Shown: positions 9,935-34,931 of the stretch, piece after piece | Layout: the number at the start of each line of letters is the position of its first letter | Position numbering within the stretch: the stretch's first letter is position 1 | Assembly: GCA_037447605.1 (NCBI GenBank) | Contig: CM074807.1 | Coordinates: forward strand, 3,670,829-3,734,828 | DNA length: 64,000 nt | Reading direction: 5' to 3' | DNA from: Zygnema circumcarinatum SAG 698-1b | Lineage: Eukaryota > Plantae > Zygnematophyceae | Notes under the pieces: generated by a model | The model's database searches: none | Seen by the model: only the letters and a program-made list of their open reading frames with translations | What the model was told of the DNA's origin: nothing | Program-made: the position numbers and the translations under genes

Positions 9935-10142
9935 GCAAACGCCACGTCAAGTCCTACGAAGGGTCGTAGCAAGTGCGTGCCGTGAACCGTCCGTACGGTT
10001 ACTGGGCAATTGTCCGTACAGCACGAATGTCGTACAAGGTAACCGACCGCCATCGTCGGGCACCGATTCCGTTGCGGTGCGGAAGGCTCCGTCCTGTACG
10101 GACCATAGGAACCGTACGTGTCTGGCTGGAGATAAATGGAAA

Positions 10143-10306
10143 GGGTAGTGCTAAATTCACACCTTTTTTGTCTAGACACAGGCCTTTTTTCGCCGGGCAG
10201 ATTTTAAAATAGACCAAAAATGATTAAAAACAGAAAATGCTTTGTTCACACCTTTTTGGAATCGATACAGCCCTTGTTCCGTCGGGCAGATTTTATTTCA
10301 CAATCC
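10143..10306 (+). repeat. Left long terminal inverted repeat (~164 bp, starts GGGTAGTGCTAAATTCACAC)
   Basis: Reverse complement of 18614-18776 with about a dozen differences by manual alignment (~90% identity). Contains two internal ~50 bp sub-repeats ending GGGCAGATTTTA. Confidence 0.85.
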
Positions 10307-10375
10307 TTCACGCCCGTGTGGTGATTCCGTACCACACTATTCCATTTGGAGAATGATAACCCGTTCCCCCCATTA

Positions 10376-10508
10376 GGGCGTGTCAGACTTAACGAAATCT
10401 TACGAACAAAAAAGTTTTGTAAGTACTCCGCCGCACCAGGATTACGATGTCACCGAAGTACTCGTTCTGGTCTCAAACTTACGAGAGTTTTTTAAGTCTG
10501 ACACGCCC
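10376..10508. mobile_element. MITE family A, copy 1 (TA-flanked)
   Basis: TIRs GGGCGTGTCAGACTTAA / TTAAGTCTGACACGCCC with TA on both sides. The body is highly similar to 18436-18565. Confidence 0.8.
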
Positions 10509-10513
10509 TATTA

Positions 10514-10713
10514 GGGGGAGTCAGACCTTGACCATCGCCAAGCGATTTCGTAAGCCTGTCGGGCAAATTAAGCATTGACTAGGTACTGTACGCATTTCGG
10601 TACGGCTGTGTACGGCGGAGCCGCGGATCCCGAACCGGAATTCGTACACGAAAGAAGTGACTTGTATAAGGAATTCGGGAATTTCGTAAGCGATGATCAA
10701 GGTGTGACTCCCC
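10514..10713. mobile_element. MITE family B (TA-flanked, TIR related to family A)
   Basis: GGGGAGTCAGACCTTGACCATCGC versus the reverse complement of GCGATGATCAAGGTGTGACTCCCC (2 mismatches in 24 bp), with TA flanks. Confidence 0.7.
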
Positions 10714-11540
10714 CTATTTTGGATACCCCCTCCCCCTGAATTTTGTTGAGAGACCGGAAGATCCGTCCGAATCGCAAGTGCGAGTGAGCTCGTTCCTCGG
10801 CCCGAGATCTCCGCAAAACAACGAGCTGGACCGGCCAGCCTGTGGAAATAATGAAGCCAATCACCATCTGCCACGTGTCCTTCTGTATGACGTAGCAAAT
10901 TGTGATTGCTCCAGGCTCTCAATGTTTAACGGTATTTCGCATTTCCTCGAAGCTGCGACCATATGACTTTGGAACGGACTCGATTCAGTTACAGTACAGG
11001 GTAGTCGCGTTATAGTGACAGTTTTTATAATGACAAAATGGTACCCGACGTTTTTTCCGGGAAACGGAATTGCACCACTGCAGATCCTGCGCCAGTAGTG
11101 ACGTCAAAACGGATATAATGACATTTGAAAAGCCCTCATTGTCCGATTGTCGCGATGGCCTCGCCATCGCGAGTTCAATGAAATTTCCCCCTCATTGTTA
11201 CTATGTATTCATATATATATATATAAATATAACCTTACCTGATCTATTTTTCAATTCAAAACCTGTTAATCGAAACGGCTTTCGAACATGGTCACGCTAT
11301 GACTCTGTACGGTAGTCACGCATAAAATCTCTAAATCGTACGGTTTGTGTACGGCACCAATAGGAGCTCGTGTAGTTATACTCATGTGTGTTGGTCTACA
11401 GTGAGAAATATCTGTAATAACATTGTCACTATACCTGTAAAGTGACAAATGGGTCAAAGGGGTGTGCATGGAGATTTAATGTTTTTACTTTTTAGGTTTT
11501 CCGGGTGGTTTGGTCAAGGAGGTGGAGCTGATGTTGGGAT

Positions 11541-11588
11541 CACGGAATCACGGAATCACGGAATCACGGAATCACGGAATCACGGAAT
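11541..11588. repeat. Tandem repeat (CACGGAAT)6
   Basis: Six perfect 8-bp units. Confidence 0.9.
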
Positions 11589-12250
11589 GCAAGAAGAAGT
11601 CTAACGCAGTGAATCATGAAACCAAAATTATTTACAGAGGTGGATCAAAGGGCAGATTCAACGGAGTTGAATTTTGCTTCATGGTAGCACTGTCACAGTG
11701 GACCTCCATCCACATGATGGTTTTAATCAACGTGTTCAATCTACTTGTTATAAAATTCATAAATTTTATTTAATCTCAATTTGATTCACAATTTAATTTC
11801 GTATATTAAGCTGTTGGCATTATAATTGTGGATTGGAATTGATCTTGAAAAAAAAAAAAAACCAAGTCATGTTACATTGAGGGCGGGACTCCCTGCGTTT
11901 ACATTCAACCGATCAAAAAAAAGGCCCTTCAACAGCCGAAGCCAAAGTCCTGAAAGAAAATGAATTAATGCACCGAATGCTGGCCAGCCCCTCGTCTACT
12001 TCTGTGCGCCTATTTACAGTCCTCTGATAAACCGTTCTGTGGGCCTCCCTCCCTCCCCTCTCTCTCTCTCCCACTTCTGTCCCTCTCCCTTCCTCTCCGT
12101 CTCTTCCCTCTTCTCCCATTCCTCTACTTCCACCCCCATCTCTCACACCTCCCTCTTCTCTCTCCTACACTTTCTCCTCACCCCCCACCTTCACTTCCCC
12201 ACCTTTTGCTCCCCGCCTATCTCCCTCCACCTTCTCTTCCTCCTCCCTCT

Positions 12251-12375
12251 CCACTCCCTCCACCTTCACTCCCTCGTCCGCCTTCTCTCCGTCTCCCTCT
12301 CCACTCCCTCCACCTTCACTCCCTCGTCCGCCTTCTCTCCGTCTCCCTCTCCACTACCTCCACCTTCACTCCCTC
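12251..12375. repeat. CT-rich 50-bp minisatellite within a larger low-complexity tract (~12040-12600)
   Basis: 12251-12300 and 12301-12350 are identical, followed by a partial third unit and degenerate copies. Confidence 0.8.
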
Positions 12376-12600
12376 CACCTTCACTCCCTCCTCCGCCTTC
12401 TCTCCCGTCCTCCCTCTACACTACCTCCACCACTCCCTCCTCCCCCTTCTCTCCCTCCTCCCTCTCCACTCCCTCCACCTTCACTTCCTCCTCCATCCTC
12501 CCTACCTCCTGAACCTTCTCTCCCTCCTCCCTCTCTACTCCCTCCACCACTCCTTTCTCCACCACTCCTCCCTCCACCTTCACTCCATTCTCCATCTTGC

Positions 12601-15600
12601 CTACCTCCTGTTCTCCTTGGGCACAAGTCCCAACACTTCCATCATCAACGGGTCATACCGCCTCTCTCTCGCGTGCTCCGAAACTCCCTCCTGCCGCGAA
12701 TTCCGGAAATTTGCGCTCTCTCTCTGCAGCCCTCTCTTAAATTCCAACATCGCTTCAAACTGGTTCTTCCGAAAGCTCTGCCTTCTCTCCTCCTCGTCCT
12801 TTTCGTACCTTGCCAACTCCACGGTGAGATCATTTCCCTCTTTCAGAGACACTTCATACACTCGCAGCTCTTCCTCAAGCTCCTCTTCGTCTCTCCTGCC
12901 AACAAAAAAGACAAATCCAACGCTTTGAGGAGTACATAAACCGAATCCCTTGCAAGGTTTGCTGAACAGCAGCTATCTTTCGGTCACAAATAACTTCATA
13001 AAAGATGTCTTTATCGAAAAATAAAGACAACGCAACACTCCCTGGTCTCCGATGAAGCTCACCCATTCGAACCCTCACACTTTCCCTCTCTCCCTTTCCT
13101 CCGCTTTGCACACCTGCTTTGCTCCTCCTTCGGCATGGGACTTCCCGCTCCGTCTCTCCCTCCTCCTATGGTCGGATGGGGGGAAGAGTTTCTCTGCTGA
13201 AGCTTCTTCTCCATCTCACGCTTCACTTGGTCAATCTTCTTCTTCGTCTCCTCCTCCGAGTACTTCATTTGCTCTTCGAAAATCAGTTCCATCTCCTTGA
13301 CCTGAACCACCCGGAAAACCTAAAAACATTAAATCTCCATGCACACCCCTTTCATCCTCCGCTATCCACTCATGGCCCTCCCTCTTCCCCTTTTTCCCTC
13401 TCTCCCTCCCTCCCTCCCGCCCTCCCCTCCACTCACCATTTTCTTGTTCTCCCTCTCACGCTTCGAAAATATGTCTCGCAGTGCCTTCACCTCCTCCGCT
13501 TTCCCCTGAAGCTTCTTCGACAACTTCTGAATGTGATTTTCCACATTCATACTCTGCTCCTTGAGCTGCTCATTTTCCGCGATCGTAACATGAAGGTTCA
13601 GCTGAAGGTGGCGGGCTCTCTCCGCATCCAACTGGGCCTGCTGCATGGGAATCTCTACTACCTCCTTCCACTTGCAGAGAAGGGCCTTAACAGCAGATTT
13701 GCCTGCGGGTGAGAGAAGAAAACAGAGCAGAAGGAGGAGGAGGTGGAGGAGGACGAGGAAGGGTAAGATGAGGATGAACATGGAACTTTAGGATCGAAGG
13801 TAGGGAAAGGTAGGATTGCTTGGTACCTCTCTCTACTTCCTCCCTTTCTACCCTCCCCCCTCCCCCCNNNNNNNNNNCCTCACCCAAGTGCTTGTTGAAA
13901 CCCTCCAGGTCGTCCAGCGTGGCCAGCCATCCGTACAGGATGACCTTCCCGTCCGGGCCCACTTGCCGGCCCGAACCCTTCCTCAGCCACGCGCTGCGCC
14001 CTCTGTTCTCTTCGTTGAAGAGCACACTCAGCCGCACTGCCTCGTTGTAGCCCTCATAGCGGGGCTCGAATATGAGGAGGGAGAGGCCGCGGTGGCCCTA
14101 CAAAGGACGAGAAAAGGAAAGGAATTCGAGCAACGATTGGGGGGGCATAAGGGGCTTTGGATTCGTGTTTTTCGCGTTTGTGGGGTTTGATTTGTGTGCA
14201 AGAGTTAGACGAGAGTGTGGATTTGTATGGTTTCGGGGGGTTTTAGGTGTACCTCTGGGCCGTATGAATGCTTTCGTCGCTGTATGTGTTTGAAGGACTT
14301 GAAAGTGTCGTTAAGTTCCTCGTTGCCCATTCCAATCCACTGTTCGCACCAGAAAACAAAGAACGAAAGAAATATATATTAAGGGAGATGGCGGGCTAGA
14401 GATGGGGCGGGGACAAAAACAAGCGGAGAAAGAAAGAGAGAGGGTGGGGGAGAGAGTGGGAATGAATTGGAGAGCGAAAGAGGGGGAGGGAGGGGAAAGA
14501 GTGGGAGAAGACGAGCGCAGGGGAGGGATGTGAGCGAGGGCGCGAAAGGGAGGGGTAAAGGGGGGAGGGGCACTAAGGGGGAGAGAGAGGGAGAGAGAGA
14601 GAGAGAGAGAGAGGCGGACCTTATCCCCATCATGGTGCGAGCGTGTATCGACCACAATCACAATGGGAGGCCAAACCACCATCTTCTCCCTCTCCTTGGG
14701 TGCCTGCTCCCCCGGAGCACTCCACCGGCCTTGTGGCTCAGAGCTGAGGATGGTCAATCCCCTCCTCTCCAGCACTGCCTTCATATCCACAGCCAACTTT
14801 CGGTGCTCCCTCTCCCTCCTCTTCGTAAAAGTGGAAGCGTGGAGGGCGAGGGCAGAGAGGCTTGCATACCATTTGGTCTCTCCCCGCCCTCCTAAACACA
14901 ACTTACATTTCCATTCCCTCCCCACCTCGTCTGCCAGCTCGTTCGTAGTATAAACGGACTCCAGCTTCATCAGAAACTCCGACACCGCTTTGCTGTGCTT
15001 GCCGGAGTCTCTCCCTTCCGCTGCCACACTCGCCGAATGGATGTCCAAATCCTCATCACTATCAAACACTAAAGGATCGTCCTCCTCGTCTTCGTCGTCA
15101 CTCAGAATTCGGCCCAAGCTCTCTCTCTCACCGTCTTCCTCCTCTCCTCCAGCTTCCTCCTCTCCGTTCTCTCTCCCGGTCCTTTCCCCCGAAGGCCTTG
15201 TTGAGCTCAAACTCTCGACCTCCAAGGGGTCGAATTCGCACACCCATTTTCCCGTTCTAGCAGATTTCTGCATGTCCCATGGAACTGTTGTTCCTGCAGA
15301 AGACAATCCGTGGGCCGATTCCTCTATGAAGGATTCCGGAAACTGATATTCTGACTTCTCTTCCCATGCATTATTTTGTTTACTAATCCTGTTGTTGTTC
15401 TTGTTCCCTCCCCTCCTTCCTCTGGCAGTTTTTGTCTCCCTCCCCTCCTCCAACCCCTCTCCCTCTGCTCTCGCATACTTGGGCTCCCACCCAGGGCCTC
15501 CTCTGGGAACAGGAAGCTCAAGACTGCCCCCACTGCTGACTGAACGCCTATCTGCCTCCATGGCTGCGCAGTTTCCTGCAGGAAAATACGTGTTATTAAG

Positions 15601-16586
15601 AATAGCCGACCAGCTTCCTTCCGCCGAGACTTTCCCTCCAGACCCAAAGCTCCCGACGGGAGAAACACTCCCTCTCCCTCTCCCTCTGCCTCTCCCTCTT
15701 CCCGCCTCTCCCTCCCTTTCCGTCCTTCCAGCCTCCCCCCATCCATCCTTCGCTTCATTGCCGGCCCATGGAGAGGCTGCAGGCTCTTGACCTTTCCTCC
15801 CTCTTCCACTCCCTTGGCCCTCCTCCCTTACCAGTGCTGAACCCCGGCCTCTCCCTCCCTTACCCCCCCAATGGGAGGGAGGGGGAACAAGGGGCTTAAC
15901 CCCGAAATCCTCTGAGGATAAGCTGCCCTCCCCATCTGTTCCCCAATAATTCCTCCAGCTCTCTTCCACCTGAGATCGTGACATCCCCCATGTTCCCTGC
16001 TCCAACGGGCTCCCGTTTGAAGGAATGGACTCTGCGGGAAGTCGCATAGAACCCCTTGGTTGCGTGGCAGGGCCATTCCCTCCCGTTGAATGCGTTCCAT
16101 GTGGTGGAATTTCTTGAATTTTTTTCTCCGGTGCCTCCCTCCAAAAGCCCCATCCCTTTCCACTGCTGCTGAACAGAGTGCTCGAACCCGAGTTCATGGA
16201 AATATGCGGCTCGGTTTTAGGGTTTGGTTCGCCCCACCCCGTCGCAATTCCGGCGGACCTTTGGACGGAATTACGGGCAGAGCTTTGGACGTAATTAGAA
16301 ACGGAGTTCGGAACAAAATCATGAGCCGAGTTCTGAGTGGAATCTTGAGCAGAACTATGCGGAAAAGCTTCCACGTTCATGGATTCCTCAAGAGGAGCAT
16401 CCTCCCATCCAGTGATCTTCCCCCACCTGGTCTTTACCGGAACCTTTCCGGGCGGCCATGTTCTCCTTACCTCTGCCTCAGCACTACAAGTACCCCCCAC
16501 TTCAGCAGCAGGAGGAGGAGGAGGAGGAGGAGGAGGAGGAGGAGGAGGAGGAGGAGGAGGAGGAGGAGGAGGAGGAGGAGGAGGAG

Positions 16587-16621
<35 letters not shown>

Positions 16622-16640
16622 GGAAGAGGAGGAGAACGAG

Positions 16641-16675
<35 letters not shown>

Positions 16676-17187
16676 GGAGGAGGGAGAGAGGGAGGGAGAG
16701 GAGGGCGAGGGGGACCTGAGCCCCCGTCCTCCCACCCCTTCCCAATGTATGGCGGCTCCATGTCCGACCGCGAGGCGCTGTCCCTTCCCCCATGTGTCAG
16801 CCCCTTCCCATAGTCGACGCTCTCTCCGCTGTCGGACACCACGCTGCCCCAATGGTGCTTTCTGGTCGGATCCATGGCCATGGCCACGCGGGACACCCCC
16901 CATCCGGAAGCCCATGCATCCGCTCCGCCCTGGCTGAGGCCCTGGCTGGCACCTGCAGGAGGAGGCGGAGAGGGAGAGGGAGAGGGAGAGAGAGGAAGAG
17001 GGTAGCCATGGAGGCTTCCTCCAGCTCCACCTCCACCTCCCCATCCCTCTCCCCTTCCCAACCCTGCTCCTGCTCCTGCTGCTGCTCGTTCTCCTGCCCC
17101 TGCTCCTGCGTCTGCTCCTCCTGCTCCTCGTCCCTTACCTGTCGTTCCCTTACCTTTCGCTTTTCTAGGAAAAACTGAAGAAGCCAT
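12601..17187 (-). CDS. SGS3: SUPPRESSOR OF GENE SILENCING 3-like protein (GW/WG-rich N-terminus, zf-XS, XS domain, coiled coil)
   Basis: zf-XS WKCKLCLGGRGETKWYASLSALALHASTFTKRREREHRKLA. XS domain VVWPPIVIVVDTR...|WIGMGNEEL...RKHSYGPE|GHRGLSLLIFEP...LYGWLATLDDLEGFNKHLG. Downstream coiled-coil exons. Exon 1 is 17187-14620, exon 2 14339-14253, exon 3 starts 14097, and the last exon ends at TAG 12601. A 10-N gap lies in an intron. Confidence 0.85.
16511..16681. repeat. (GGA)n/(GAA)n trinucleotide tract encoding the polyproline run of the SGS3-like protein
   Basis: Near-pure GGA repeat; the minus strand reads CCT/CTT codons in the SGS3 frame. Confidence 0.9.
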
Positions 17188-17809
17188 GCAATCTGGAGGG
17201 GGCAGCCGGAGAGGGGGCAAGAGCGAGAGGAGAGGGAGAGTGGGGGAAGGAGAGATGGAGAGGGAGAGAGAGAGGGAGGGAGAGAGGCAGGGAGGGAGGG
17301 CGCGTCTCCCTCTTGAGAGGGAGCTGCAGCTTAGCAGAAAATCAAGAAATTTGCAGATAAGCAAAACCTTCTCCGGGGAAAATTTCATGACTTATTTCCC
17401 CCCTCTTTCTCCTTTCTCTCTCTCTGACTCCCCTCTCTCCGTCCTTTCAAATTACTTTTTTACCGCAAATTTCCGACTTATTGCTCTCCTGCCCTTCCTC
17501 ACGGTCCGTCCTTCAAGAGACGCCGCCCTCTGCATGTTTCAGCAGCTTTCTAAATCTTTTTAGCCCAAAGAAATCCCAACTCTCGCGCTTCCCTCCTCAA
17601 TTCAGTCCATGCTTGCATGTATTCACCCCGCCCGCCGGCGCGAATGCATGCGCCTCTGACTAACTGGCGCGCTCCCTGCGCGTGCGAAGTCTGCCCGACC
17701 AATCAGCGCGCGACATAGGACAAAAAAATGCGTTTCGCACTTGATCGAAGGACGAAGCAGCCAATAGGAGGCGACCGAGCCCTGGAGGTTTCCACAAAAT
17801 AAACTATAA

Positions 17810-17913
17810 TTTACGCACCTTTCTCGGCTAGATACACATTTTTTTGGGTTAAATAGAAACCCTTAAATCTGACTAGTGAAAAAACTGTGTATCTAGCCAA
17901 AAAGGTGTGCAAA
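17810..17913. repeat. Short foldback/MITE-like inverted repeat related to the long TIR sub-unit
   Basis: Arms TTTACGCACCTTTCTCGGCTAGATACACA (17810-17838) and TGTGTATCTAGCCAAAAAGGTGTGCAAA (17886-17913). They share a CACCTTTTT-G...TAGA-ACA core with the 164-bp TIR. Confidence 0.6.
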
Positions 17914-18273
17914 TAGCCTCCCAGTCCACAAAATGGGAGAACATTTCCAAGGCAGAAATGTTGAGTTTGCCTTCTCGTCACCGACATAAGCTCCTGAGAG
18001 CAAATCTTCCTTCAATCTTCTTCAATTTTCAGTCTTCAGTTTCAAGACAGAACTTTTTCACCCATCCCCTTGTTTAGACAAAAGCTTCATGTAACTGGCA
18101 TACATAACTTGCTCGAAAATAATGGGTCTGAAAAGAAAAGAAGAAGAGACTGAAATTCGTACGATCGCAGTTTCGAGGAAAGGTGAAATACCTTATAAAT
18201 TGAGAGTCTATACCAATCACCATCTGCCACGCTTTTTTATGACGTGACAAATGGTTGGTTCAAGCTCTCAATA

Positions 18274-18430
18274 GGGGGTGTCAGACTTAACAAAATCTTA
18301 CGAAAAGCGTTACGAAAAAAAAGGTTACGAAAGTACTCCGCCGCAGGAGGATCGCTATTATACTGGAGTACTTGTTCTGATGTCAAACTTACGAACACGC
18401 GTACTGAAATTTTTTAAGTCTGACACCCCC
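18274..18430. mobile_element. MITE family A, copy 2
   Basis: TIRs GGGGGTGTCAGACTTAA / TTAAGTCTGACACCCCC with TA flanks. Confidence 0.8.
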
Positions 18431-18435
18431 TAATA

Positions 18436-18565
18436 GGGGGTGTCAGACTTAACGAAATCTTACGAACAAATTTTTTTTGTAAGTACGCCGCACCAGGATT
18501 GCGATCTCACCGAAGTACTCGTTCTGGTCTCAAACTTACGAACAATTTTTAAGTCTGACACCCCC
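18436..18565. mobile_element. MITE family A, copy 3
   Basis: Same TIRs as copy 2, separated from it by TAATA. Same orientation as copy 1. Confidence 0.8.
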
Positions 18566-18613
18566 TAATGTACGGTATTTAAATTTTTTTTGAACGGATC
18601 TTCCGCTCCGAGC

Positions 18614-18776
18614 GGATTGTGAAATAAAATCTGCCCGCTGGAACAAGGGCTGTATCGATTCCAAAAAGGTGTGAAAAAAACATTTTCTGTTTTTGATCCT
18701 TTTTTGTCTATTCTAAAATCTGCCCGGCAAAAAAAGGTCTGTGCCTAGACAAAAAAGTGTGAATTTAGCACTACCC
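18614..18776 (-). repeat. Right long terminal inverted repeat
   Basis: Reverse complement of 10143-10306; ends ...GAATTTAGCACTACCC. Confidence 0.85.
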
Positions 18777-18881
18777 AAAGGAAATTGGGGGCAGGAACAC
18801 AAACACAATCACGGTTGGGCCAATAGGCGCTCGCCACGTGACAACAAATTGGAGTTTTAGAGTTTTTGCTGTACCGGAACT

Positions 18882-19202: not shown

Positions 19203-22200
19203 ATGGCGTCGACTCTCTTGGAGCAGACGCGAGCTGCGCACGAGGAGAACGAGCGTCTTGAGCGGCTGATTGTGAAGGACCTGCAGCAAGAGGTGCAGGG
19301 ACATCGAGAGCGCCTCCATCAGAGCCACCGCGTCAAGAATTTCGTCGAAACCATGGTTGCAAATTCTGCTCGCTTGGTGAGTGCTGCGCTGAGGGATTGA
19401 ATCGCTTCTTGCTTTCGCGCGGCTCTGTCCTGTTTTAGGGTTGTTTGGATCGTTAGGGTTTACCTCTATTTAGAAAGTGAAGCCGCAAGCATGTACTTTT
19501 GCAGGCGGAGGTATATGAAGACAAGGATCACGCGCGGAGGGATGAGATTGCTGCGCTTGGAGGGCAGGGGACAGCTGGCCAAAATGTTTTTAGCTCTTTT
19601 TATGACCGCCTTAAGGAGGTGGGTTTGCATTCTTGACCTTCATATGTCGCCAGCGTTCTCGACTTCTCGCATATTTTTTGGGAATGGTCTAGTTTTGGGA
19701 ATACTTTTGACTAGCCGGAGACATTCAAAGGTTGCAGTTAAGCAATTCGAAGCAGGAGGTTGTTTCGAAAGCTAGAATGAAGTCTGGGCGCAAAAAAAAA
19801 TAAAAAGCTTTTCGTCGTTACTGTTGTTATTTGTATCTCACATGAACCTTTCCCTGCAGATAAGAGATTATCATCGTAGACATCCGGGAGCGAAAGCTGT
19901 TGATCCGGGCGAGAATCCTGACGAGCTTATCAAGGAGGAGCCATGGATTGAGTTCAGCGGAGAGGTGAATATTGTCACGTCACATTGCCCATTAATAATA
20001 GCTTAAGTAAACGGAGAGTTTAAACTGCTTATGGGCCACGCACGAGGTTAAACAATGCATATTGAGCTTTCCAAAGGTCAGAGGGACCATGAGTACATTG
20101 CTTGTTTATAGATACCTCTGCTGTTCTGGGTCACGTGTAACAGGAGGCGTACGGGCGCTATCTTGACCTACACGAACTCTTCAACACTTTTATGAACGCT
20201 AAATTTGGGCAACCAGTTGAATACTCCGCTTACATTGAAGAGTTTCATCAAACTCACAAAATTCGACAAAGCTTGAAGTTTACAAAGTAAGGATGCGATT
20301 CAATCTGCTTGCGGAAGACTTGCAATTATTGTTAGTTTGTTTAGGGTTGTAGGAAGCTTGTTCTTGTTCTGGTGGTTCCAGTTCTGTCGATTGCAGTATA
20401 CTCTATAGAATCTTTGGCAATGTTGCTTAAAGCATTGCTCGTCATACCCAAGCGATGGTAACCCTGTACTTGCATTCAAGGTCACCTAATCGTGCTCATA
20501 AGTGATTGCAAGTTCAGGCCTGGGAGGGCCTTTTTTGTTAGGTCGTTCTATGACACTTAGCTGATTGGGTGGATGATCTCTTGTGAAGGGGCTATAAGGA
20601 GTATCTGGGAAGCCTGCTTGAGTATTTGACATCATTTTTCGACCGAACTCAGCCCCTACAACCATATGAGAAGATCATGGCAAAGGTAAACTTCATCTTA
20701 GCTCTTCTGTTTCGGGCTTCCGTTGCACCTGTAGGTTGGTTTCATTTCTAGTCAAAACTTTGAATAAATAGCTTTGGGAGATATCTATTGAGGAATGTAA
20801 TTTAGTTATAATGTGCACGGGGCGAAAAAATTCTGTTCCACTGCTGCTTTTGCTAAACTGTTAGACCTAGAGGACTAGGTTACCTAAGTTACTAAGGTTA
20901 CAATTGGGTATTCAGTCAAATTGATGACGTCTTTCTATCAACAAGTGGGGAACTTAAAAGCATAAAGTATAATGACTCTAAGCATCATATACATAGAGTA
21001 GCATGTCTATGGTAGTTGTGGAGGAAACCAGTATAATGATTCGTGTCGCTGGGAATTTTCCCCTAACTATTGCAGCACTTTGTCAAGCATGGGGCATGAC
21101 TGAATGAATTCTTGTCGGCTGTATTCTGCTTACGCGTAATGAACTGAGGTAGATTTTTCATAAGGAAACAGTTTCAGTCTCCAAGTTGGCAATGTCGACA
21201 AGCTTTGGATTCTTGACGTGAGTATTCTGGGTTAGGTCTGATGAAATCTTCGTTAGAGGATATACTCTCTAGTTTTTTTCCCCTCGTAAACGTGTCGGTC
21301 GTCATTGTGGAACTAACTTATATTGCGGGAAAGCTTTGATATTTCCTGCACTTAAGATAGCATGGGGTACAAAGCTTAACGTGTGGAGGTTTGCTACGGA
21401 GGCAAACATTGCCCTGACTCCCCTTATACTTGTATTGAACCTTATGCCTACAATATTATCGGCCAGACTCACTGTAGACTTCCTCGATTGTGGTCCTTCT
21501 ACTTAGCCTTGCTAGTCATTTACTTACAGAGTCCTCTCACTCCTGATTTTATTTCTGTACTCATGCCCGAGTCTTTCATCTTGGGACTGTGTTTGCATAC
21601 TGAAACCATGCGAGGTTGTTGTTCACAGCAATGCGAAACTCATGCTAGGCTGTGCTCTACATACTAGCTGTAGAACGGCTTCAAAGCATGCTTCCATGAA
21701 CTAGAACTGTGCAATTGGACATGCAGGTCTTATCCTGGATGACGATTTGACAGCAAATATTGGCAGTCTGCGCCGAAAAATCAATGGGGTTCGAAAACTC
21801 GGGTATTCAGGCGAATGCCTGACTTTATGTGGTTCTGTGTTTCCTTCTGGTCGTAATTCCGTCAGAGTGGTCGGAACTCCCCTCACCATCAGTAGGACAT
21901 CTTTTTGTAGCAAAGTGAGGTAGAATAACAGCAGCCAAAGCATTTGAAGGTGACGAGAAGTGGATGAAAGTTGAAGCTAACTGTGTGATTGTTCTGAGAG
22001 GTAGACGGTCTGTTATACTTGTATGGAGTGTATGGAGTTGTTTGGAGTTGCTATCATCGAGTAGTTTGGAGATGGAGGACCCGGGTGAGTATTGAAGGCG
22101 TTTGGTGTCACTTGAACCAAGTAGACGGATCAACCGTGATTTTGAAGTGCGACATCATCGTTACTTTGCACATAGGACGGATTAGCATCACTTGCTATAC

Positions 22201-25159
22201 TAGCATTTCCCTATTTTTGTTCTTAGCTCTTGTCCTTGTATTTCTCGTATGCTGTTCTCTTCGCCACTCCTCTGCTTAAGGTGCATTGGCATCTGCACCA
22301 GCATCTTCAACCTCGCACTAGTGGTTTCTGCAAGGCTGGTTTTCAGTTCGTGGGTCATATTCCAAATGAGAAGTTCTCTATTTCTCTAGTTTTTTTGACT
22401 CTCTGAGTAGCTTTTCGTCCTGTTGTGAATCAGTGGCGTGGGAGGAGTAGGAACAGCCTTAGATATCAGCACTTGCAATGGCTAGGAGGGCTGTCAGGGG
22501 CCATGTTGCCTCCTGTTTGAACAGTTAGTTCACCGACGTTGTTTTGCATTTGTTATTCCATGTAATTTCATCTTGTAAATGTAATTTGGCGGGTTGAAGC
22601 TCGTTTTAAAGTGGCTTTTTTTGTGGTTGCAGGTGGAAGCAGATTTTGAACCCAAGTGGGAAGAAGGCAAGGTGGCGGGGTGGGAAGATTCTGGAAGAAG
22701 CAATGGAGATGCTTCCTCTACCGCGAGGCAACAGGACATTGTCGACCTGCAAGAGTTTGACACAGTAGAGGAGCTCCTTGATCCTGAACTTGTGCCTCTG
22801 GAAAAACTCAAGCAGGTTGGATGCAATGCCTTGTTTGAGTCCCTTAATAGAATTGAATTGGCCTGAAAACTTGCACACATAGGCTTATTTAGTGGTAGTT
22901 GGGGCCCAACATTTGCTGTTCTCTGACTTTCTAAGGGAGCCACTCAGTCGTGCTGTTGAACTGAAGTGCGTTCAGGAACGGTTCTATGCAGGCTCTTGCA
23001 GCTCTTGGACTGAAAACTGGAGGGACCCCACAGCAGAGAGCAGAGCGACTTCTGTTGACTAAGGTATGCACAACAGACCACTTACCGCTGCATCAATCTC
23101 CCCCCTTTCTTTACGGGATGTTTGCCTCTTTGTTTACCCAGAAGTTGGGTTCTTTTGCATTCTCAATGTGCTTTTGGGTTTGTTGACAGGCGACGGCTCG
23201 AACAATTAATATAAGCATTGGCTCCACTTTTGTTGCATGCCGAGCATGATTTGCAGGAAACTCGTTTGGATGATTTGGATCCCAAACATTTTGTGAAGGG
23301 GGCGAGACCGTCCAAGAAGACAGCAGGGGATGATGCTATCCGTACAGCAGAAGGAAAAGACATAGCACTCATGGAAGTTAAAGTGCTGAAGTTGGTGGAG
23401 CTGCTTAAGGAGGTGGGTCTGCAAGATACTCTATATTTCAAGTCAAGTAGTGGGATAATGTAGACTTGGCATTTGCTTTTCTACCTGTTTAAAGGTCGTC
23501 TTTCCCGAAAAGAATTTCCTTTCTTTTCAAGTGAAGAAGGCAATGACTCCCTTCTCGAAACGCAATCTGTGGTAAACTCTTATTTTCTTATTCGGACAAA
23601 CTGAAGGGCTTACAAAACGCGTTCTTACTTGTAATGGGCTTGAAAAATTTTACCTTAACTTGCTCCCTCCTTTCATTCTCTCTTTTGGTGCCCAAGAGGA
23701 TCTGATCATCGCTTTTGCTTTTGTCCGCCATTGTGTGCAAGCTCATGGTATGTGGGAAGCCTTTGATAAATCTTTTATCCCATTCCTATTTGTCTCCTTT
23801 GTTCCCGCAGGCAATTGCAGAGACGAAAGCGCACGTGGAGAAGAAAATGGCTCTCACATATGAGGAGATGGAGGCAGAGAGAGAAGAGGTGAGGAAGGGC
23901 CCAACTCACATGGCCTTGCTCTCTGATATTGGTGTTTGTTAGAGGCCATTTTCCTCGGATTACTTTACTTTACCCTAGGCCTTCCGATCGACATGATATG
24001 GTCTTTGAATCCTAGACTTTAAGGTGGAGAAACCAAGACACAAACTTCTTCATGTGTATATGCCGAGACTTAAGAACTTCAGGAACTTTTCGTCTGCTGA
24101 CTGTGCTGTAGCACATTGGCAAGCCTGCGCTTTATTTGAAAAGGCAAGCAGGGTCTGTTCAAATCCCTTATAAGCTGATTGGGGTATGGGAGAGGTGGTT
24201 TTGCAGCATGAGGCAGCTACTGTTGAGGAGGAGAGCGATGATGAGGAGGGGCAGATTTACAACCCTTTGAAACTTCCTATGGGGTGGGATGGGAAGCCTA
24301 TTCCTTATTGGCTTTACAAGCTGCACGGTCTCGGTCAGGTAAATTTTTGCAGCTTTGGGGGGCAATGTTGACTGTGGAAAGATTGCACGTTAGCATTAAG
24401 GGAGGTGTAGCAGCTTACTTTTTTTGTAGACAGTACCAGGTTTGAGATGATTTTTTGAAGTAAAAGGGGGTTGTTATTAAGCAGCAGCTTATGTTTATTT
24501 TTTTCATTTTTAGAACGAAGGCAGTGTTTCAGTCTGAAAGAAGAGTTGCTCAAGGGATAATTCAATAAAGCAGTTAACAGGAAGGGCCCCTGGATTGTGC
24601 AGGAGTTTAAGTGTGAGATTTGCGGCAATTACAGTTACTGGGGAAGGCGTGCTTTCGAGAGACACTTTAAAGAATGGAGACACCAACATGGAATGCGTTG
24701 TCTTGGCATTCCTAACACCAAGAACTTCAACGAAATTACCGTCATAAAGGTCAGAACCATGCCTCCTGCTTTTGCAGAGTCGACTTGTCTCACTCTCTCT
24801 CCCAGCTCTGCCTTAACCTAAACGTCATTGCTTCATTGGAAAGGAGTAAACAAATCACTCGGAGAGCAGAGACTCATGGCATGCTGATATCACCCGCACA
24901 AGCAGATGCATGTAGAGATAGATGGGTGAGAGCTACTGTCTTGATCCTCTTTGGAATTTAGATGCGACGAAGAGATGATGGACTTTATTAATCTGCATTG
25001 AACGCAACGCAGGATGCGGAAGCCCTGTGGGAGAAGATCAAGGAGAAGCAGGGGGTGAACAAATGGCGGCCGGAGGTGGAGGAGGAGTACGAAGACACGG
25101 AGGGGAATGTGTACAACAAGAAGACCTACACTGACCTACAAAAACAGGGCCTCTTGTAG
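19203..25159 (+). CDS. SF3A3: Splicing factor 3A subunit 3 (SF3a60/ATROPOS), multi-exon
   Basis: N-terminus [27 protein letters not shown]. Internal [24 protein letters not shown] and zinc finger [40 protein letters not shown]-terminus [26 protein letters not shown]. Confidence 0.95.
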
Positions 25160-25931: not shown

Positions 25932-26415
25932 ATTTATTTACAATTTGCAACAAATAATTGTTCCCTTAACAGCCAGTAGAATTTCGAACTTAAAAAACGG
26001 CCTTTTTTTTCTTTTTTCCCAATTCGGGCAGCTCGCCGGCTTTGAAACATTTTTCGTCCCCCTGCCTGCACCCGGCCGTACGGTCAACATTGAAATGTTG
26101 TCCGGGCGATCCTGTCGGTACATCCGGGCAGCCGTACCGTAACTCGAACGTGACGTGACGTGATATGACGTATGCTATGCTACCTGACGTGTCGTGACGT
26201 ATCGTGTCGTATTTGTTTGTCGCGACGCGAGGCTCGCGTCACGATCGTGAGACGTCCACAGGCGGCCACGTAGTCACCCCTCCCGCGCTGCCCGCCGGAG
26301 GCCCCGCGCTCGCTCGCCCACTCACTCTCCCTCACTCTCTCCCTCTCTCTCACTCTCTCGCTCTCTCTCTCTCGCTCTCTCTCTCCTCTCCTCTCCTGAT
26401 CTTCCTACAGAAGCC

Positions 26416-29400
26416 ATGGCGGCCGCTCCTGCAACAAGCCTCTTGCACTCCCTGCAAGCACCGCCCTCTGCAGCAGCAGGCGGCAGCCATGGCGGAGGGC
26501 TCCGGGAAGGAAAGGGACTTGCGATGCAGCGCACGGCCGCCTTCCTCGGGCGGCCCTCCCAACACTTCACTTCTCGACCCGCCTTGCGAGCTCGCAGAGG
26601 TCCCATCCTCGCGGGAGTCTCCCCCCTCGAAACGGAGACAGAGAAGCAGGGAGAGGCGAAGGTAGTGGAGCTGCTCGAGAAGCAGCTGTCGGAGCCCAGT
26701 GCGGTACTCGTCGGAGAAACGCTGGCACAGAGAGAGGGAGAGGGAGAGAGAGAGAGAGAGGGAGAGAGAGAGGGAGAGAGAGAGGGAGAGAGAGAGGGAG
26801 AGAGAGAGGGAGAGAGGGGCTCCAGAGTGAGAGAGCTGCTTGGAGAGCTCCGCCACAGCCGCGCCCAGAACACAAAGAGGGAAGTCTCCCCCTTGGCCTC
26901 CCTCCAGGCCTCTCTCTCTAAGGCGGTGGCCTCCTCCTTTTTGGGATTACTGAAGGTGGTGGTGAAGGAGGAGGAGGTGGTGGAGGAGGAGGAGGAGGCC
27001 CTTCAGGGGAACTGGGGGCCCGTGCGGGAACTGGGAGCCATGGCGGGCCCTCTGAGGGTCATATCTGGAGAGCTTCCTGCCGACTTTCCGCGGGGAATGT
27101 TCATCAGGTGGGAAGATTTCAAAGGGCATGTTTGTAGAATGTTTTAAAAATGTTGAGCAATGTTGAACGAGTCAGGCAATTCTCCGTAGGGAGCTTTTTT
27201 AGATTTTTTTTTAGATTCTGTTTCTTACCTTCCTTTTGTGTTCTTATTTTCTTTTCCTACCTCAGCAAGTTAATCTCTGTTCTTTTCGCTTTCCCTCTTA
27301 ATTAAAAGTAATTTACGGATCGTTTTAAGCATCCAGATCAGCATGCTTCCATTTTCTTGCTCACTTCTTTTCTGGCGCCCCTTATTTTCCCTGAACCAAT
27401 TCACATTTACTCGTTTGATTAAACAAGTTTTTACCTCTGTTCCTTTCTTCCTCCCATTCCTCATCTCCACTCTACAATTTTTCCTACCCCCCTCCTTACC
27501 ACTCCCTCTCCCTATCCCTCTCCCTCTCCCTCTCCCTCTCCCTCTCCCTCTCCCTCTCCCTCTCCCTATTCCTATCCCTCTCCCTCTCCCTCTCCCTCTC
27601 CTTCTCCCTCTCCTCCCTCTCCCTCTCCTCCTCCCTCCCTCCTCCTCCCCCTCCCCCTCCCCCTCCTCCTCCCCCTCCCCCTTCCCTCCCTCTCCTCTCC
27701 CTCTCCCTCTCCCTCTCCCTCTCCCTCTCCCTCTCCCTCTCCTTCTCCCTCTCCTCCTCCCTCGCCTTCTCCCTCTCCCTCTGCCTCGTCCTCCCTCTCC
27801 CTCTCCTTCCCTCCCGCCCTCTCTCCCTCCCTCCCTCCCTCCCTCCCTCCCTCCCTCCCTCTCTCTCTCCCTCTCCTCCCTCTCAGGAACGGGCCCAACC
27901 CATACTTCCCCCCCCTCCGGCGGGTCACTCCATGGGGCCGCGCCGAGCACCACCTCTTCGAGGGTGACGGCATGCTCCACGGCGCTTACGTCAGCAGCCA
28001 TGGCGGCGTCTTCTTCGCGAACCGCCTCGTGCAGACGGAGGGCCTCCGCGCGGACATGGCTGCCGGGAAGTCGGTCTTCTGGGGGGGCTTCAATGGGGAC
28101 CCGGGAGCGGTAATAGCCGGTAAGAGGGGAGCGAGAGAGAGAGAGAGAGAGGGAGAGGGGGGGGGGGGGAGGGAGAGGGGGAGGGAGAGACTTTGCGTAC
28201 TTCAGGAAGAAGGAGAAAAGAAAGACAAGAAGGGGTGGGGGGAAAGAGGGAGGGAGGGAGGGAGGGAGAGAGGAGGGAGGTGGGGCATGGCTTTATTGAG
28301 CATGAGTTGCATGCACGTGTGTGGCAGGTTTCTTGTCGAACTTGGCGGTCTCCGGGAAAGTGTTCAAGAAGGTCGCCAACACGAGTGTGATCGCTCACCA
28401 CGGGAAGGTGTTCGCTCTCAACGAGGCAATGCTGCCCACGGAGGTGTGCCTTCTTGGGCTGGGGAAGGGGAAGGGGGGGTTTAGAAGTGGGTAGATGCGA
28501 AAATGCCAAATATTTTCCTATAATATTTGCATATAATATCATGGGAAAGGTCGTCTCTTTCATTGCGGCATTGAAAGAGAAGGCTCACATGAATGCGGGC
28601 GAATGTCGTTGTAGTTATTGTGTCAGCAGAATGCAATAGAGGTGAAATTTGTGATGACAAATTAGAAGAGCATAGAACGGCAAGCTTTATTCCGACTGCA
28701 CCTCCGGTGATGATTCATGATTCAGCTGCTCTTGTTGCAGATTCTCCTCCCGAGCCTTGAAACAGTTGGGGAGTACGACTTTAACGGAAAACTGGATACG
28801 GCATGCACAGCACACGCAAAGATCGACCATTCAACAGGTATGTTCGAAAGGTTGCCTTACGTTACTGAATTGGCTTTCAGATGTTCAAAATTAGCAAATT
28901 GTTACTTGCTTCTGAGATATGGGGTTAACGCAGTTTTGCCTCCATGGATTGTCCAGGGGAGCTTATCTTCTTCAGCTATCAGGTCTCAGCCCCACATGTT
29001 ATCCTCTATGTGGCATCACGTGAAGGTGAAATCAAGCATCGTGTGGAAATCGATACAGGCTATGCCACTCCGATGCATGATTTCGCCATAACGGAGAAAT
29101 ATAGCATCATAGTGCACGAGGGTCTCACCATCAATCCGCAAAGAATCGCAGAGGGGAAGCCTTTGGTCGATTTCGAACCGGAAAAGGGATTGAGGTTTGG
29201 GGTCATTCCGCGATTCGGAGATGCATCCTCTCTTAATTGGTTTGACGTTGAGCCGGGCTTCACATTCCATATTATGAACTCGTATGAGGGTAAGCTTCTC
29301 TCTTCCCGCTCTTCGCTTTGACAGTCACTGTTTCGAACTGAAACTGAAACTGAAACTGAAACTGAAACTGAAACTGTGCAGATGGAGACGAGGTTGTGTT

Positions 29401-29731
29401 GCACGCCTTTCGACAAAAGATTGCGGTTTTGAGAGCTCCTGCGGGGCAGACGTGGAAGGAGTTTTTGCCGCAACATTTTGAATCTCCTGATGGGAAACTG
29501 CTCGCGCATCTTCATGAGTGGCGACTCAATATGAGGACGGGAGAAGTCGTAGAACGGCAGCTCGGACCTACAGGTCTGTCGGCGGAGTTTCCGCGGATTA
29601 ACGATAACTATGCCGGTCAAAAGTATAGGTAAGGGCTCACAATTGCTGTAGCTATGTGGTTACTTAGGTTTCATTTAGCCTTCTACTCAAGCTTACAGAG
29701 GACGAGAGAGAGAGAGAGAGAGAGGGGGGGG

Positions 29732-29765
<34 letters not shown>

Positions 29766-30193
29766 GAGAGCGAGAGAAGTGACATGCGGAAGTTGTACGG
29801 ATGGCTGGTGGGTGGTGCAGGTTTGGGTATGGTGCAGTGTGTGACATAGAGAATAGCGTAAAGAAGGGCCTGTACCAATTGTACGGTTCAATTGCAAAGT
29901 ATCACCTTCCGGAAGGCTCCGTAGATACAGCGCTGCCTGTGAAAACAGAGGTCCATTCGTTCGGGCCGCGACGGTACGGAGGAGAGGCGGCATTTGTACC
30001 GCGAGTGAATGCAAAAGCTGAGGACGATGGGTGGCTTGTGACCTATGTCTATGATGAAGGGGAGGATGCTTCGGAGTTTTATGTCATCGACGCACAGAAC
30101 ATGGGAGGGGAGCCGACGTTGAGAGTCGCTCTCCCGCAGAGAGTACCCTATGGCTTTCACGGCTCCTTCATCCCTGGAGAGTGGGATGTGTGA
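26416..30193 (+). CDS. Carotenoid cleavage dioxygenase (RPE65/CCD family), copy A, CCD1/4-like
   Basis: [43 protein letters not shown]. Four iron-ligand His in [21 protein letters not shown] and VPYGFHGSF. YGGEAAFVPR, EDDGWLVTYV. Ala/Ser-rich N-terminus. Confidence 0.93.
27503..27880. repeat. CT-rich low-complexity/(CTCTCC)n tract in CCD-A intron 1
   Basis: Read directly from the sequence; explains the spurious LP/GR/EG ORFs here. Confidence 0.85.
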
Positions 30194-31264
30194 AAACGTT
30201 GAGAGTTCATGATGTCTTGAAATGTGTATAGCTTGTACGTGTCAATTGACGCACGGGGGCTGCTTATGTGTGGTCTATGCCTATGATAGTATTGTGTGGC
30301 TGCGTTCAAACAGCCTATAATCCTGCGGGAACTTCAGGAAGCCTTCGCGATAGAAAGGTCGGTGTATAGCATGCAACTGCATGTGCAGACATGCACATTG
30401 TACAGATTCAATGAGTGAAGTTCGTGGTCCGCCCACCCATTTCATCGATTATTTCTGCGCTGATTTGCGCCATCTTGAAGCCTGGGGATTACAAGGCTAG
30501 GAGGCGCATTCTTCTTTATGTGAAAGGCCCTCGGGCCCGTTTGCGCCCCCCATTCATACAAGGTGTGCAAGGCCTACAACTCATGTACTGGAAATTCTAT
30601 AAGACGCGCGTACTATTGTTTAGTTAAACCGTCTGTTCCCGCACCACATCATGTCGACGAATGCCTGAAATTCTCAGCCCACACATGCATGCCCATGCAT
30701 ACATACATCAGCCACCCATCCATCCTCGTCTCTCCGCCCGGTCGGTCGCCGCACGCAGGCCCGCCACGTCGTCGTCCGACCCATCTAGAAGCTTCGCGAG
30801 GCATAGGACGGTGCCACCGACCTACATGCAGCACGTGGCACTCTCCGTATGTTTTCGTACGGCCTCAAACCGTACGAATTTGTTCTGTACCGCAGATCAG
30901 CAATGCAGGATGGCCCTATCATCTACTGTCACGTGACATGCACGTCACGTGGCACGGTCCTACGGGCTCGTCTCCCGGGCTTTCCGCTGCGTGCTCCGAT
31001 GCGCCCCAAATCGCGCATAGGGGCACCACGTGGCAATGGCTGCGGACCGCCGGCACATGCAGAGGCTTGCAACGGAGCGGCGCGCAGAGTGGCCTTCGAC
31101 TCCCCGAGGTGAGCACACGGCATCTCTTACAAGAGCACCTGCTTAAAAATTCGTCGACCGGGGGACGTGTGACGAGGGAGTTTGAAAGAATGTTGTGACG
31201 GCTGTCACGTTTTTCTCATCTTTTTTAGCTCCATCCCCAGGTGAGACTTTGGAGGAGGGCAGCA

Positions 31265-34195: not shown

Positions 34196-34931
34196 CAGTG
34201 GAAATATCACGTTTTGGGTTTTGGGAAAACTGCGTTTGTAGCCCTTGCGGCTTCTTGTTGCCTGTAAATAAATGATTTTCGAGAATGCGCAGAGTTATCC
34301 GTGTACATGTCTTGCTTCTTTTTTTCTATTATAGCCATCATGATGTGGCCACGATAGATGGCTATTATTGGCACTCGTGTTAGTATCCTCTTGTGGGCGT
34401 GCATGGTCTGGCTTTTTATAGCGAGATGGTTTTGCTTGTCAATGTTGTACAATGTTCCAACATTCGATGAGGGAAGGGGGTTGAATGAAAGCTCCTGTCG
34501 CAGTGATCAATTTGTAGACACATGGAGACACCTTTGAAGCATGTTCTGTGTGAAATTTTTATTTGCAACGTTTCCCCCCATTAGAAAAGTCTAAAAGTTT
34601 TCTATATATATATTTTTTTGTTTTTAAGAAAGATTACTAACAACAGAAACACCACTCAAAACAAAGTTAGACAAAAACAGAGTACACAAGGATTTATCGT
34701 TTCATTTTTGACGGCACTTCCCGCAGCACAAGCGAACGCTACTCCAAAGCATGGCTGCAAAATTTTGCATTCTAGGAACATTGTGTTTAGAGAGAAAAGA
34801 ATCGACAGCGAAAGGAATGCGATTTGAATAAGAGGGAAAAAGAAATGTTCTCTTTGCTATGCACAAATGTATGGTACAACATCCTCTTTCTACAGCTTCG
34901 CTATTTACTCCTCACAGTTCGTCCACCACTT

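Follow-up and report, generated by a model that had tools for sequence, protein, structure and literature searches.

The window analysed in this study is a 64-kb stretch of the genome of the alga Zygnema circumcarinatum SAG 698-1b (contig CM074807.1, positions 3,670,829 to 3,734,828 of the forward strand), and all positions below are those of the window. Between its LACS and SF3A3 genes, the window carries a gene resembling SGS3, a component of RNA silencing, and this gene is bracketed by two long terminal inverted repeats (TIRs). The first-pass annotation of this DNA had described inverted repeats of about 164 bp, about 90% identical, with GGG...CCC termini and internal sub-repeats, bracketing 8.6 kb. 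It had also noted that the outer flanks resemble a decayed 8-9 bp target-site duplication (TSD). These features were recovered here, and are as follows.

10135 to 10142, unstranded: left flank, candidate target-site duplication AATGGAAA, 7/8 against the right flank
10143 to 10306, plus strand: left terminal inverted repeat (arm A), two ~64-nt sub-repeats and a 25-nt spacer, tip GGGTAGTGC
12601 to 17187, minus strand: SGS3-like gene, six exons, about 1,210 codons by added exon lengths
18614 to 18776, minus strand: right terminal inverted repeat (arm A), by self-comparison and alignment
18777 to 18784, unstranded: right flank, candidate target-site duplication AAAGGAAA, 7/8 against the left flank

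A two-sequence alignment showed that the arms, 164 nt long, are identical at 152/164 positions (92.7%), and the 12 differences include one 1-nt indel. The arms are 8,307 nt apart, the whole unit from 10143 to 18776 measures 8,634 bp, and the outer tips read GGG...CCC. The similarity ends sharply both outside and inside, with the inner border lying after ...CACAATCC in both arms. Each arm consists of two ~64-nt sub-repeats, about 69% alike, with 25 nt between them. Self-comparison of the whole 64 kb gave no further copy of the 164-nt arm besides this pair, and neither an inner partner end nor a private TSD was found for either arm. The arms have no internal TIR and no private TSD, so we rejected the possibility that each of them is a small element complete in itself. 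An RNA origin was likewise rejected, since a search of Rfam at E <= 0.1 gave no match in the arms. When an 18-mer of the arm tip was compared with metagenome contigs, the 12 matches were all limited to 18-46 nt and were taken as chance. Three unrelated metagenome contigs (L008, L009, and L012) matched the arm tip over 30-31 nt at 87-90% and no further, and these were also treated as chance.

The flanks of the unit agree at 7 of 8 positions in the 8-bp register, and at 6/9 in the 9-bp register, or 8/9 if a 1-nt deletion is allowed. Among random pairs of positions in this window, the chance of at least 7/8 was 6.6e-4, and that of a match at any length of 7-11 with no more than one mismatch was 2.7e-3. 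The first-pass annotation had warned that A-rich flanks weaken this evidence. For pairs in which both 8-mers are A-rich (at least five A), the chance of 7/8 indeed rose to 1.0e-2. The concern is therefore valid, yet the flank signal survives it. A chance origin of the TSD-like flanks is thus improbable (P about 0.001-0.01).

The flanks bear directly on an alternative already raised in the first-pass annotation, in which SGS3 is native between LACS and SF3A3, the arms are two independent solo ends of a dispersed family that happen to be opposite, and the flanks are similar by chance. Elements like MITEs (miniature inverted-repeat transposable elements) gather near genes, four other small elements lie in the same intergenic stretches, and the A-rich flanks lift the chance match to about 1%. 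Against this, three coincidences would be needed, namely the 7/8 flanks, the identical inner borders, and the same order of subterminal blocks (A-B-X, described below) with no A or B elsewhere in the 64 kb. Moreover, no private TSD or partner end accompanies either arm, and the arms are 93% alike compared to about 55-61% with the other member of the family in the window. The flank match, the inner borders, and the block order thus weaken this alternative, and we regard it as doubtful, although still to be reckoned with.

The regions just inside the arms contain the following features.

10374 to 10510, plus strand: MITE B, 137-bp copy, 19-nt TIR starting TAGGGGGTGTCAGAC, TA on both sides, 88% in direct orientation to 18434-18567
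10512 to 10716, unstranded: second MITE, 205 bp, B-like 27-nt TIRs (93% complementary), separated from B by a single T
10857 to 10970, unstranded: block X, left copy (x1 at 10857-10923, x2 at 10924-10970), in common with 18153-18272
11456 to 11535, plus strand: inverted 80-bp gene-fragment copy, 85% to the intron/exon-E junction (13279-13352) of the SGS3-like gene
18153 to 18272, unstranded: block X, right copy, by similarity to 10857-10970
18272 to 18432, plus strand: MITE B, 161-bp copy, by similarity and profile search
18434 to 18567, plus strand: MITE B, 134-bp copy, separated by a single A from the preceding 161-bp copy

A sensitive comparison of the inner flanks revealed that the order from the outside in is alike on both sides: arm A, spacer, MITE B, block X. 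The left side has a single copy of MITE B (134-161 bp, with 19-nt TIRs and TA on both sides), and the right side has two. All three are oriented alike, on the plus strand, so that the two sides are not simply mirrored. Between the sides, x2 of block X is inverted (79%) and x1 is direct (78%). In the self-comparison of the 64 kb, the MITE family was confined to the two ends of the 10143-18776 stretch, and no copy of A or B was found elsewhere in the window. Besides low complexity, the only repeats that the whole-window comparison gave were the arm pair, the MITE family, the 80-bp gene-fragment copy, and a tandem pair of dioxygenase-like genes. These results demonstrate that the ends are related across 0.6-0.8 kb, but have been reworked.

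The co-orientation of the B copies near both arms is what independent insertions could produce, and to that extent it favours the solo ends described above. The mirrored order over 0.6-0.8 kb would also fit an explanation without any transposon, in which a local inversion through staggered breaks left inverted duplicates of the breakpoint sequence around the SGS3 segment, as such inversions leave inverted duplicates at block ends. However, the divergence between the sides is uneven, with 93% identity in the outer 164 bp, then unalignable spacers, and then 79-88%. The arms also have transposon-like sub-repeats and are kin to an element that bears a TSD, and an inversion leaves the 7/8 flank match unexplained. 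We therefore consider this explanation very unlikely.

Some further observations concern the same regions. On each side, two MITEs meet with one base between them (left ...CCCTA-T-TAGGG..., right ...CCCTA-A-TAGGG...), and these two are the same junction read on opposite strands. A simple reading is that the end-to-end MITEs are two insertions at neighbouring TA sites of TWATWA, with a TA duplication as in Stowaway-like elements, and not ligated cut ends. The source of the 80-bp inverted copy is the junction of the fourth intron and exon E, and the copy lies about 1.1 kb past the stop codon of the SGS3-like gene. It is directly followed by approximately six copies of an 8-nt microsatellite, ATCACGGA (window 11456-11590 for the copy and the microsatellite together). 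The fragment looks like the filler DNA of a repair or template-switch event. If read-through occurs, a transcript passing through this copy could pair with its own pre-mRNA.

A small element related to the arms lies within the unit.

17801 to 17924 (17791 to 17934 with flanks), unstranded: small A-like foldback, two inverted A-like units found by nhmmer with the A-unit profile

The profile was built from the four ~64-nt units of the arms, and the two diverged A-like units gave E values of 5.4e-5 and 0.067. The 124-bp foldback is bracketed by direct repeats of 10 bp that match perfectly (TCCACAAAAT, 17791-17800 and 17925-17934). The core common to the small foldback and the arms is CACACCTTTTT-G-CTAGA-ACACAG. 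The perfect repeat, as a putative TSD, shows that A-type ends belong to a mobile family with target duplications of 8-10 bp. The units of the small foldback are only about 55-61% identical to those of the large arms, whereas the large arms are 93% alike, as is expected of the two ends of one element. Located about 0.6 kb upstream of the start codon of the SGS3-like gene, the small foldback has a GGG-type terminus at its right tip and not at its left.

The gene between the arms had been called an apparently complete, intron-containing SGS3-like gene and the only gene inside the unit, and the present analysis agrees with both points. An open frame of 1,025 codons (17388-14311, minus strand) holds a region like zf-XS and the first part of the XS domain. 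Six exons, separated by introns with canonical GT-AG borders, were placed by reading the sequence.

17187 to 14620, minus strand: exon A, from the first ATG of the open frame
14339 to 14253, minus strand: exon B
14097 to 13884, minus strand: exon C, with the Pfam XS domain
13702 to 13437, minus strand: exon D
13319 to 13114, minus strand: exon E
12895 to 12604, minus strand: exon F, with the stop codon at 12603-12601

Similarity searches for this gene were run exon by exon. Exon C matched the XS domain (PF03468) of Pfam with 44.3 bits against a cutoff of 25. The domain is divided over exons A-C, collinear with the best relative (P0008) and with the SGS3 of Cryptomeria. Exon A is 35% identical to residues 226-364 of Cryptomeria SGS3, including the zf-XS region, and exon C is 49% identical to residues 402-469. 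Exon A gave no Pfam match to zf-XS (PF03470); it aligns with the Cryptomeria finger region (PF03470), with the CxxC and a downstream His conserved. By alignment, exons D and F correspond to the coiled-coil part of P0008, and exon D also to that of another protein, P0002. In a set of 5.8 billion proteins, the best SGS3 matches were conifer SGS3 proteins with PF03468 and PF03470 (34-35%). A HMMER scan of 1.84 billion representatives gave 102 relatives; the ones looked up come from land plants and Closterium and are SGS3 or XS-domain proteins.

The relative P0008 is 49% identical over exon A and is encoded on a 2.3-kb Logan contig by an uninterrupted open reading frame (ORF) of 693 codons. Because the frame is uninterrupted, P0008 is probably derived from mRNA. 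The exons follow each other along this protein, with exon A at residues 29-163, B at 164-192, C at 193-263, D from 266, E weakly at 364-400, and F at 419-524. The six-exon model is thus seamless and collinear with P0008, and the gene is apparently complete.

The assembly has one interruption within the gene.

13868 to 13877, unstranded: assembly gap of ten N, in the intron between exons C and D

The donor GT of exon C is at 13883-13882 in phase 1 (CACTTGG/GTGAGG, followed by the ten N), and exon D starts at 13702, supplying the two missing bases of the Gly codon. Between the exon-C and exon-D matches lie only residues 264-265 of P0008, and the split codon is one of these. Since exons C and D are contiguous on P0008 and the frame is kept, the gap is intronic and no exon is missing. 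The exons across the gap are collinear and in frame, which indicates that the contigs were joined in the right order and orientation and that the inverted repeat is not a product of mis-orientation. The possibility that the inverted repeat is an artefact of a mis-oriented contig was therefore rejected, given exons on both sides of the gap that match, collinear and in frame, a homologue probably derived from mRNA.

The predicted protein begins with an N-terminal extension of about 690 residues (15118-17187, minus strand), which is of low complexity and contains 22 Trp residues, 13 of them adjoining Gly. The number of Gly-adjacent Trp residues (13) compares with 6.6 +/- 2.1 in shuffled sequences, and 13 was reached in 15 of 5000 shuffles. 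In other silencing proteins, GW/WG repeats form the Argonaute-hook motif. The extension also includes a long proline run encoded by a GGA/GGAGG repeat. The N-termini of the Closterium, Marchantia, and Cryptomeria homologues have far fewer GW/WG, and the N-terminal 690 residues showed no significant similarity to the Closterium protein. At E <= 0.1, Rfam gave only sub-threshold microRNA-like matches in the window (29-41 bits against gathering scores of 58-137). These microRNA-precursor matches, at 16950-17090 and 17205-17452, lie in the 5' part of the SGS3-like gene and the stretch just upstream. They were rejected as not credible, being low-complexity hairpins of GAG-rich against CTC-rich sequence.

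No transposase had been noted inside the unit in the first-pass annotation, and Pfam gave no transposase domain in the 23 internal ORFs of at least 51 aa or in the exon pieces of the gene, a search that shorter or heavily decayed remnants would escape. The marks of Pack-TYPE elements were thus found together: a TIR pair, a TSD, no detectable transposase, and host coding sequence between the ends. The program packFinder tolerates up to 2 TSD mismatches (PMC8903248), and the large unit has 1 in 8 bp. As for a cluster of related elements, the window holds one small foldback with its own TSD.

Elements of the Mutator superfamily have long TIRs (about 100-500 bp) and 9-11-bp TSDs, and their autonomous members encode a MURA-type transposase. 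The TIRs found here, at 164 bp, are of such a length; the TSD of the large unit measures 8 bp (7/8), or 9 bp if a 1-nt deletion is assumed, and that of the small foldback 8-10 bp. Elements of the hAT superfamily have a strict 8-bp TSD and short (10-25 bp) TIRs with the typical start (C/T)A(A/G)NG. In comparison, the unit has TIRs of 164 bp with the tip GGGTAG and the small foldback has a 10-bp repeat, although the 8-bp register of the large unit would be possible for hAT. The combination of 8-10 bp TSDs with 164-bp TIRs favours a Mutator-like family for the large unit. A hAT-like family is possible, and the features are not sufficient to assign the superfamily.

Taken together, these results suggest, with a probability of about 0.5, that 10143-18776 is one non-autonomous unit of the Pack or composite type, with long TIRs and flanking TSDs, which encloses the whole SGS3-like gene and moved as one unit. 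The SGS3-like gene probably sits within one DNA-transposon-like unit, of which a single copy was examined. A single unit bounded by TIRs and TSDs accounts for everything except the direct orientation of B and x1, and later MITE insertion or rearrangement can cover those. The structural part of the first-pass proposal, a Pack-MULE-like or composite unit, thus gained support from the sharp TIRs, the TSD-like flanks, the mirrored blocks, and the small TSD-bearing relative; movement or capture of the gene is something we infer.

The genes on either side of the unit are also consistent with an insertion.

9050 (first ATG of the exon-1 ORF; listed ORF start 9062), minus strand: LACS, with an AMP-binding match
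19203 to 25159, plus strand: SF3A3, with SF3a60 matches of 43-85 bits

If the 8.6-kb unit is taken out, LACS and SF3A3 form a head-to-head pair 1.5 kb apart. The 1.5-kb divergent promoter region that is left after removal is ordinary, which favours the reading as one inserted unit.

Under that reading, two nearby family members, or the halves of a foldback-type member, would have flanked SGS3, and a transposase supplied in trans would have used the outer ends only. The use of the outer ends of two neighbouring elements is a proposed route for the origin of Pack-TYPE elements (PMC8903248, PMC6379663). The whole segment would then have been cut and pasted between the divergent LACS and SF3A3 genes, with a duplication of 8 (or 9) bases. 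The subterminal regions would have been altered afterwards by MITE insertions and minor repair events, one of which may have left the inverted fragment at 11456-11535. Judging by the divergence of about 7% between the arms and the single change in the duplication, the insertion is old and probably no longer mobile.

Several points weigh against one unit that moved. Only one instance is visible, and pipelines for Pack-TYPE elements drop singletons because these may be false positives (PMC8903248). The flanking duplication has a mismatch and is rich in A. The spacers adjoining the arms (65 and 46 bp) cannot be aligned, block x1 and the B copies are direct and not inverted, and the ends therefore differ from a simple long TIR. 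A complete 4.6-kb multi-exon gene, with about 1-2 kb of flank on each side, is captured much more rarely than gene fragments are, and no autonomous partner of the unit is known. Both in Closterium and on one other algal contig, the SGS3-like gene lies beside different neighbours, and both relatives are too distant to give the ancestral location. The Closterium gene (P0037) lies among Mpv17, protein kinase, Rad60-SLD, and RanBP-finger genes, and that on the Logan genomic contig (L015) beside a kinase gene and GOSR1; LACS and SF3A3 are absent from both neighbourhoods. The best match to LACS exon 1 (61%) was on short metagenome contigs, and tblastn detected no SF3A3 or SGS3 exons on the metagenome contigs matching LACS.

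The reworked ends and the 80-bp fragment also bear on how the gene may have come to lie between the arms. A foldback-type member, corresponding to the outer 0.6-0.8 kb on each side, could have inserted between LACS and SF3A3 and made the duplication, and a segment of about 7 kb with SGS3 could later have entered its centre through the repair of a break in the palindrome. The gene would then be inside a transposon but would never have travelled with it. The TIRs, the TSD, and the mirrored order of the blocks are accounted for just as well by this sequence of events, and the inverted fragment at 11456-11535 shows that repair of the template-switch or filler type took place within the unit. However, templated insertions of 7 kb with a whole working gene are very rare, and no junction signature of such an insertion was found. 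We consider this course quite unlikely, although it and the movement of the unit as a whole are indistinguishable from the 64-kb window alone. In the most far-reaching reading, a Mutator-like transposon of this streptophyte alga took up SGS3 in its entirety and transported it to a new site in the chromosomes; we hold this to be unlikely.

The window as a whole is eukaryotic, with about 50% G+C, introns, and abundant CT/GA low complexity, and nothing in it resembled human DNA. By eye, and on translation only, positions 1-2137 contain ORFs like those of the GRAS family, which would put the organism with the streptophytes that have GRAS genes (Zygnematophyceae or land plants). Exons of carotenoid dioxygenase and catalase also occur in the window. 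Two genes resembling carotenoid-cleavage dioxygenases lie in tandem at 26400-34200, with direct similarity between 27946-28093 and 32173-32317 (82%) and between 29934-30148 and 33936-34150 (75%), and GA/CT-rich low complexity precedes each of them.

That DNA transposons capture gene fragments is well documented, whereas relocation of a whole working gene is rare. To our knowledge, such a relocation is undescribed for a component of the silencing pathway that targets transposable elements, or for the algal lineages that are sister to land plants. If SGS3 was carried along by the unit, this illustrates a way in which essential single-copy genes can acquire new neighbours. Such a move would also have placed the gene between long inverted repeats that could attract small interfering RNAs (siRNAs) or invert by recombination. 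If capture and transport are true, a core component of siRNA amplification, which polices transposons, would itself be transposon cargo. The position, copy number, and perhaps the silencing state of SGS3 would then vary among strains, and the element might exploit the gene. If the unit never moved, the locus is still a clean example of MITE-type elements piling up in a divergent promoter region.

The unit resembles Pack-MULE and other Pack-TYPE elements (PMC8903248, PMC6379663, PMC5861414) in its TIRs and TSD, the lack of a detectable transposase, and the host coding DNA inside. Those elements usually hold gene fragments, often from several genes, and occur in families, whereas the unit described here holds a single gene that is complete, has introns and about 1,210 codons, and is accompanied by its flanks. 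Pack-MULEs have been described in plants, and the present case is a single known copy in a streptophyte alga. Long TIRs combined with 8-10-bp TSDs are shared with Mutator-like elements.

Composite or macro-transposons are segments mobilised between two elements, as in the Ac/Ds macrotransposons of maize and the foldback-flanked giant transposable elements of Drosophila. They carry whole host genes between two ends of the same family and are inserted with one TSD. The unit is like them in having a whole host gene between two ends of one family. They keep two complete elements, including the inner ends, whereas the present unit, as read from its sequence alone, has no inner ends.

The enclosed gene is similar to land-plant SGS3 in the order of its zf-XS-like region, XS domain, and putative coiled-coil tail. 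The identity to conifer SGS3 is 34-35% over the zf-XS region and XS start and 49% over the XS core. The algal gene differs in the low-complexity N-terminus of about 690 residues, rich in GW/WG and proline, and in that the Pfam zf-XS model does not score. SGS3 acts with RDR6 in the production of secondary siRNAs, and the algal gene is likened to it by sequence.

A Mutator-like element tied to a protein that touches the silencing machinery has a parallel in VANC of the VANDAL elements (cited in PMC13317346), an element-specific protein that removes silencing marks. In contrast to VANC, the cargo here is an ordinary host silencing gene, and there is no sign of benefit to the element. Structurally, the unit is best read as a gene-carrying non-autonomous DNA transposon of a known type, which would be unusual in holding a complete silencing gene in an alga.

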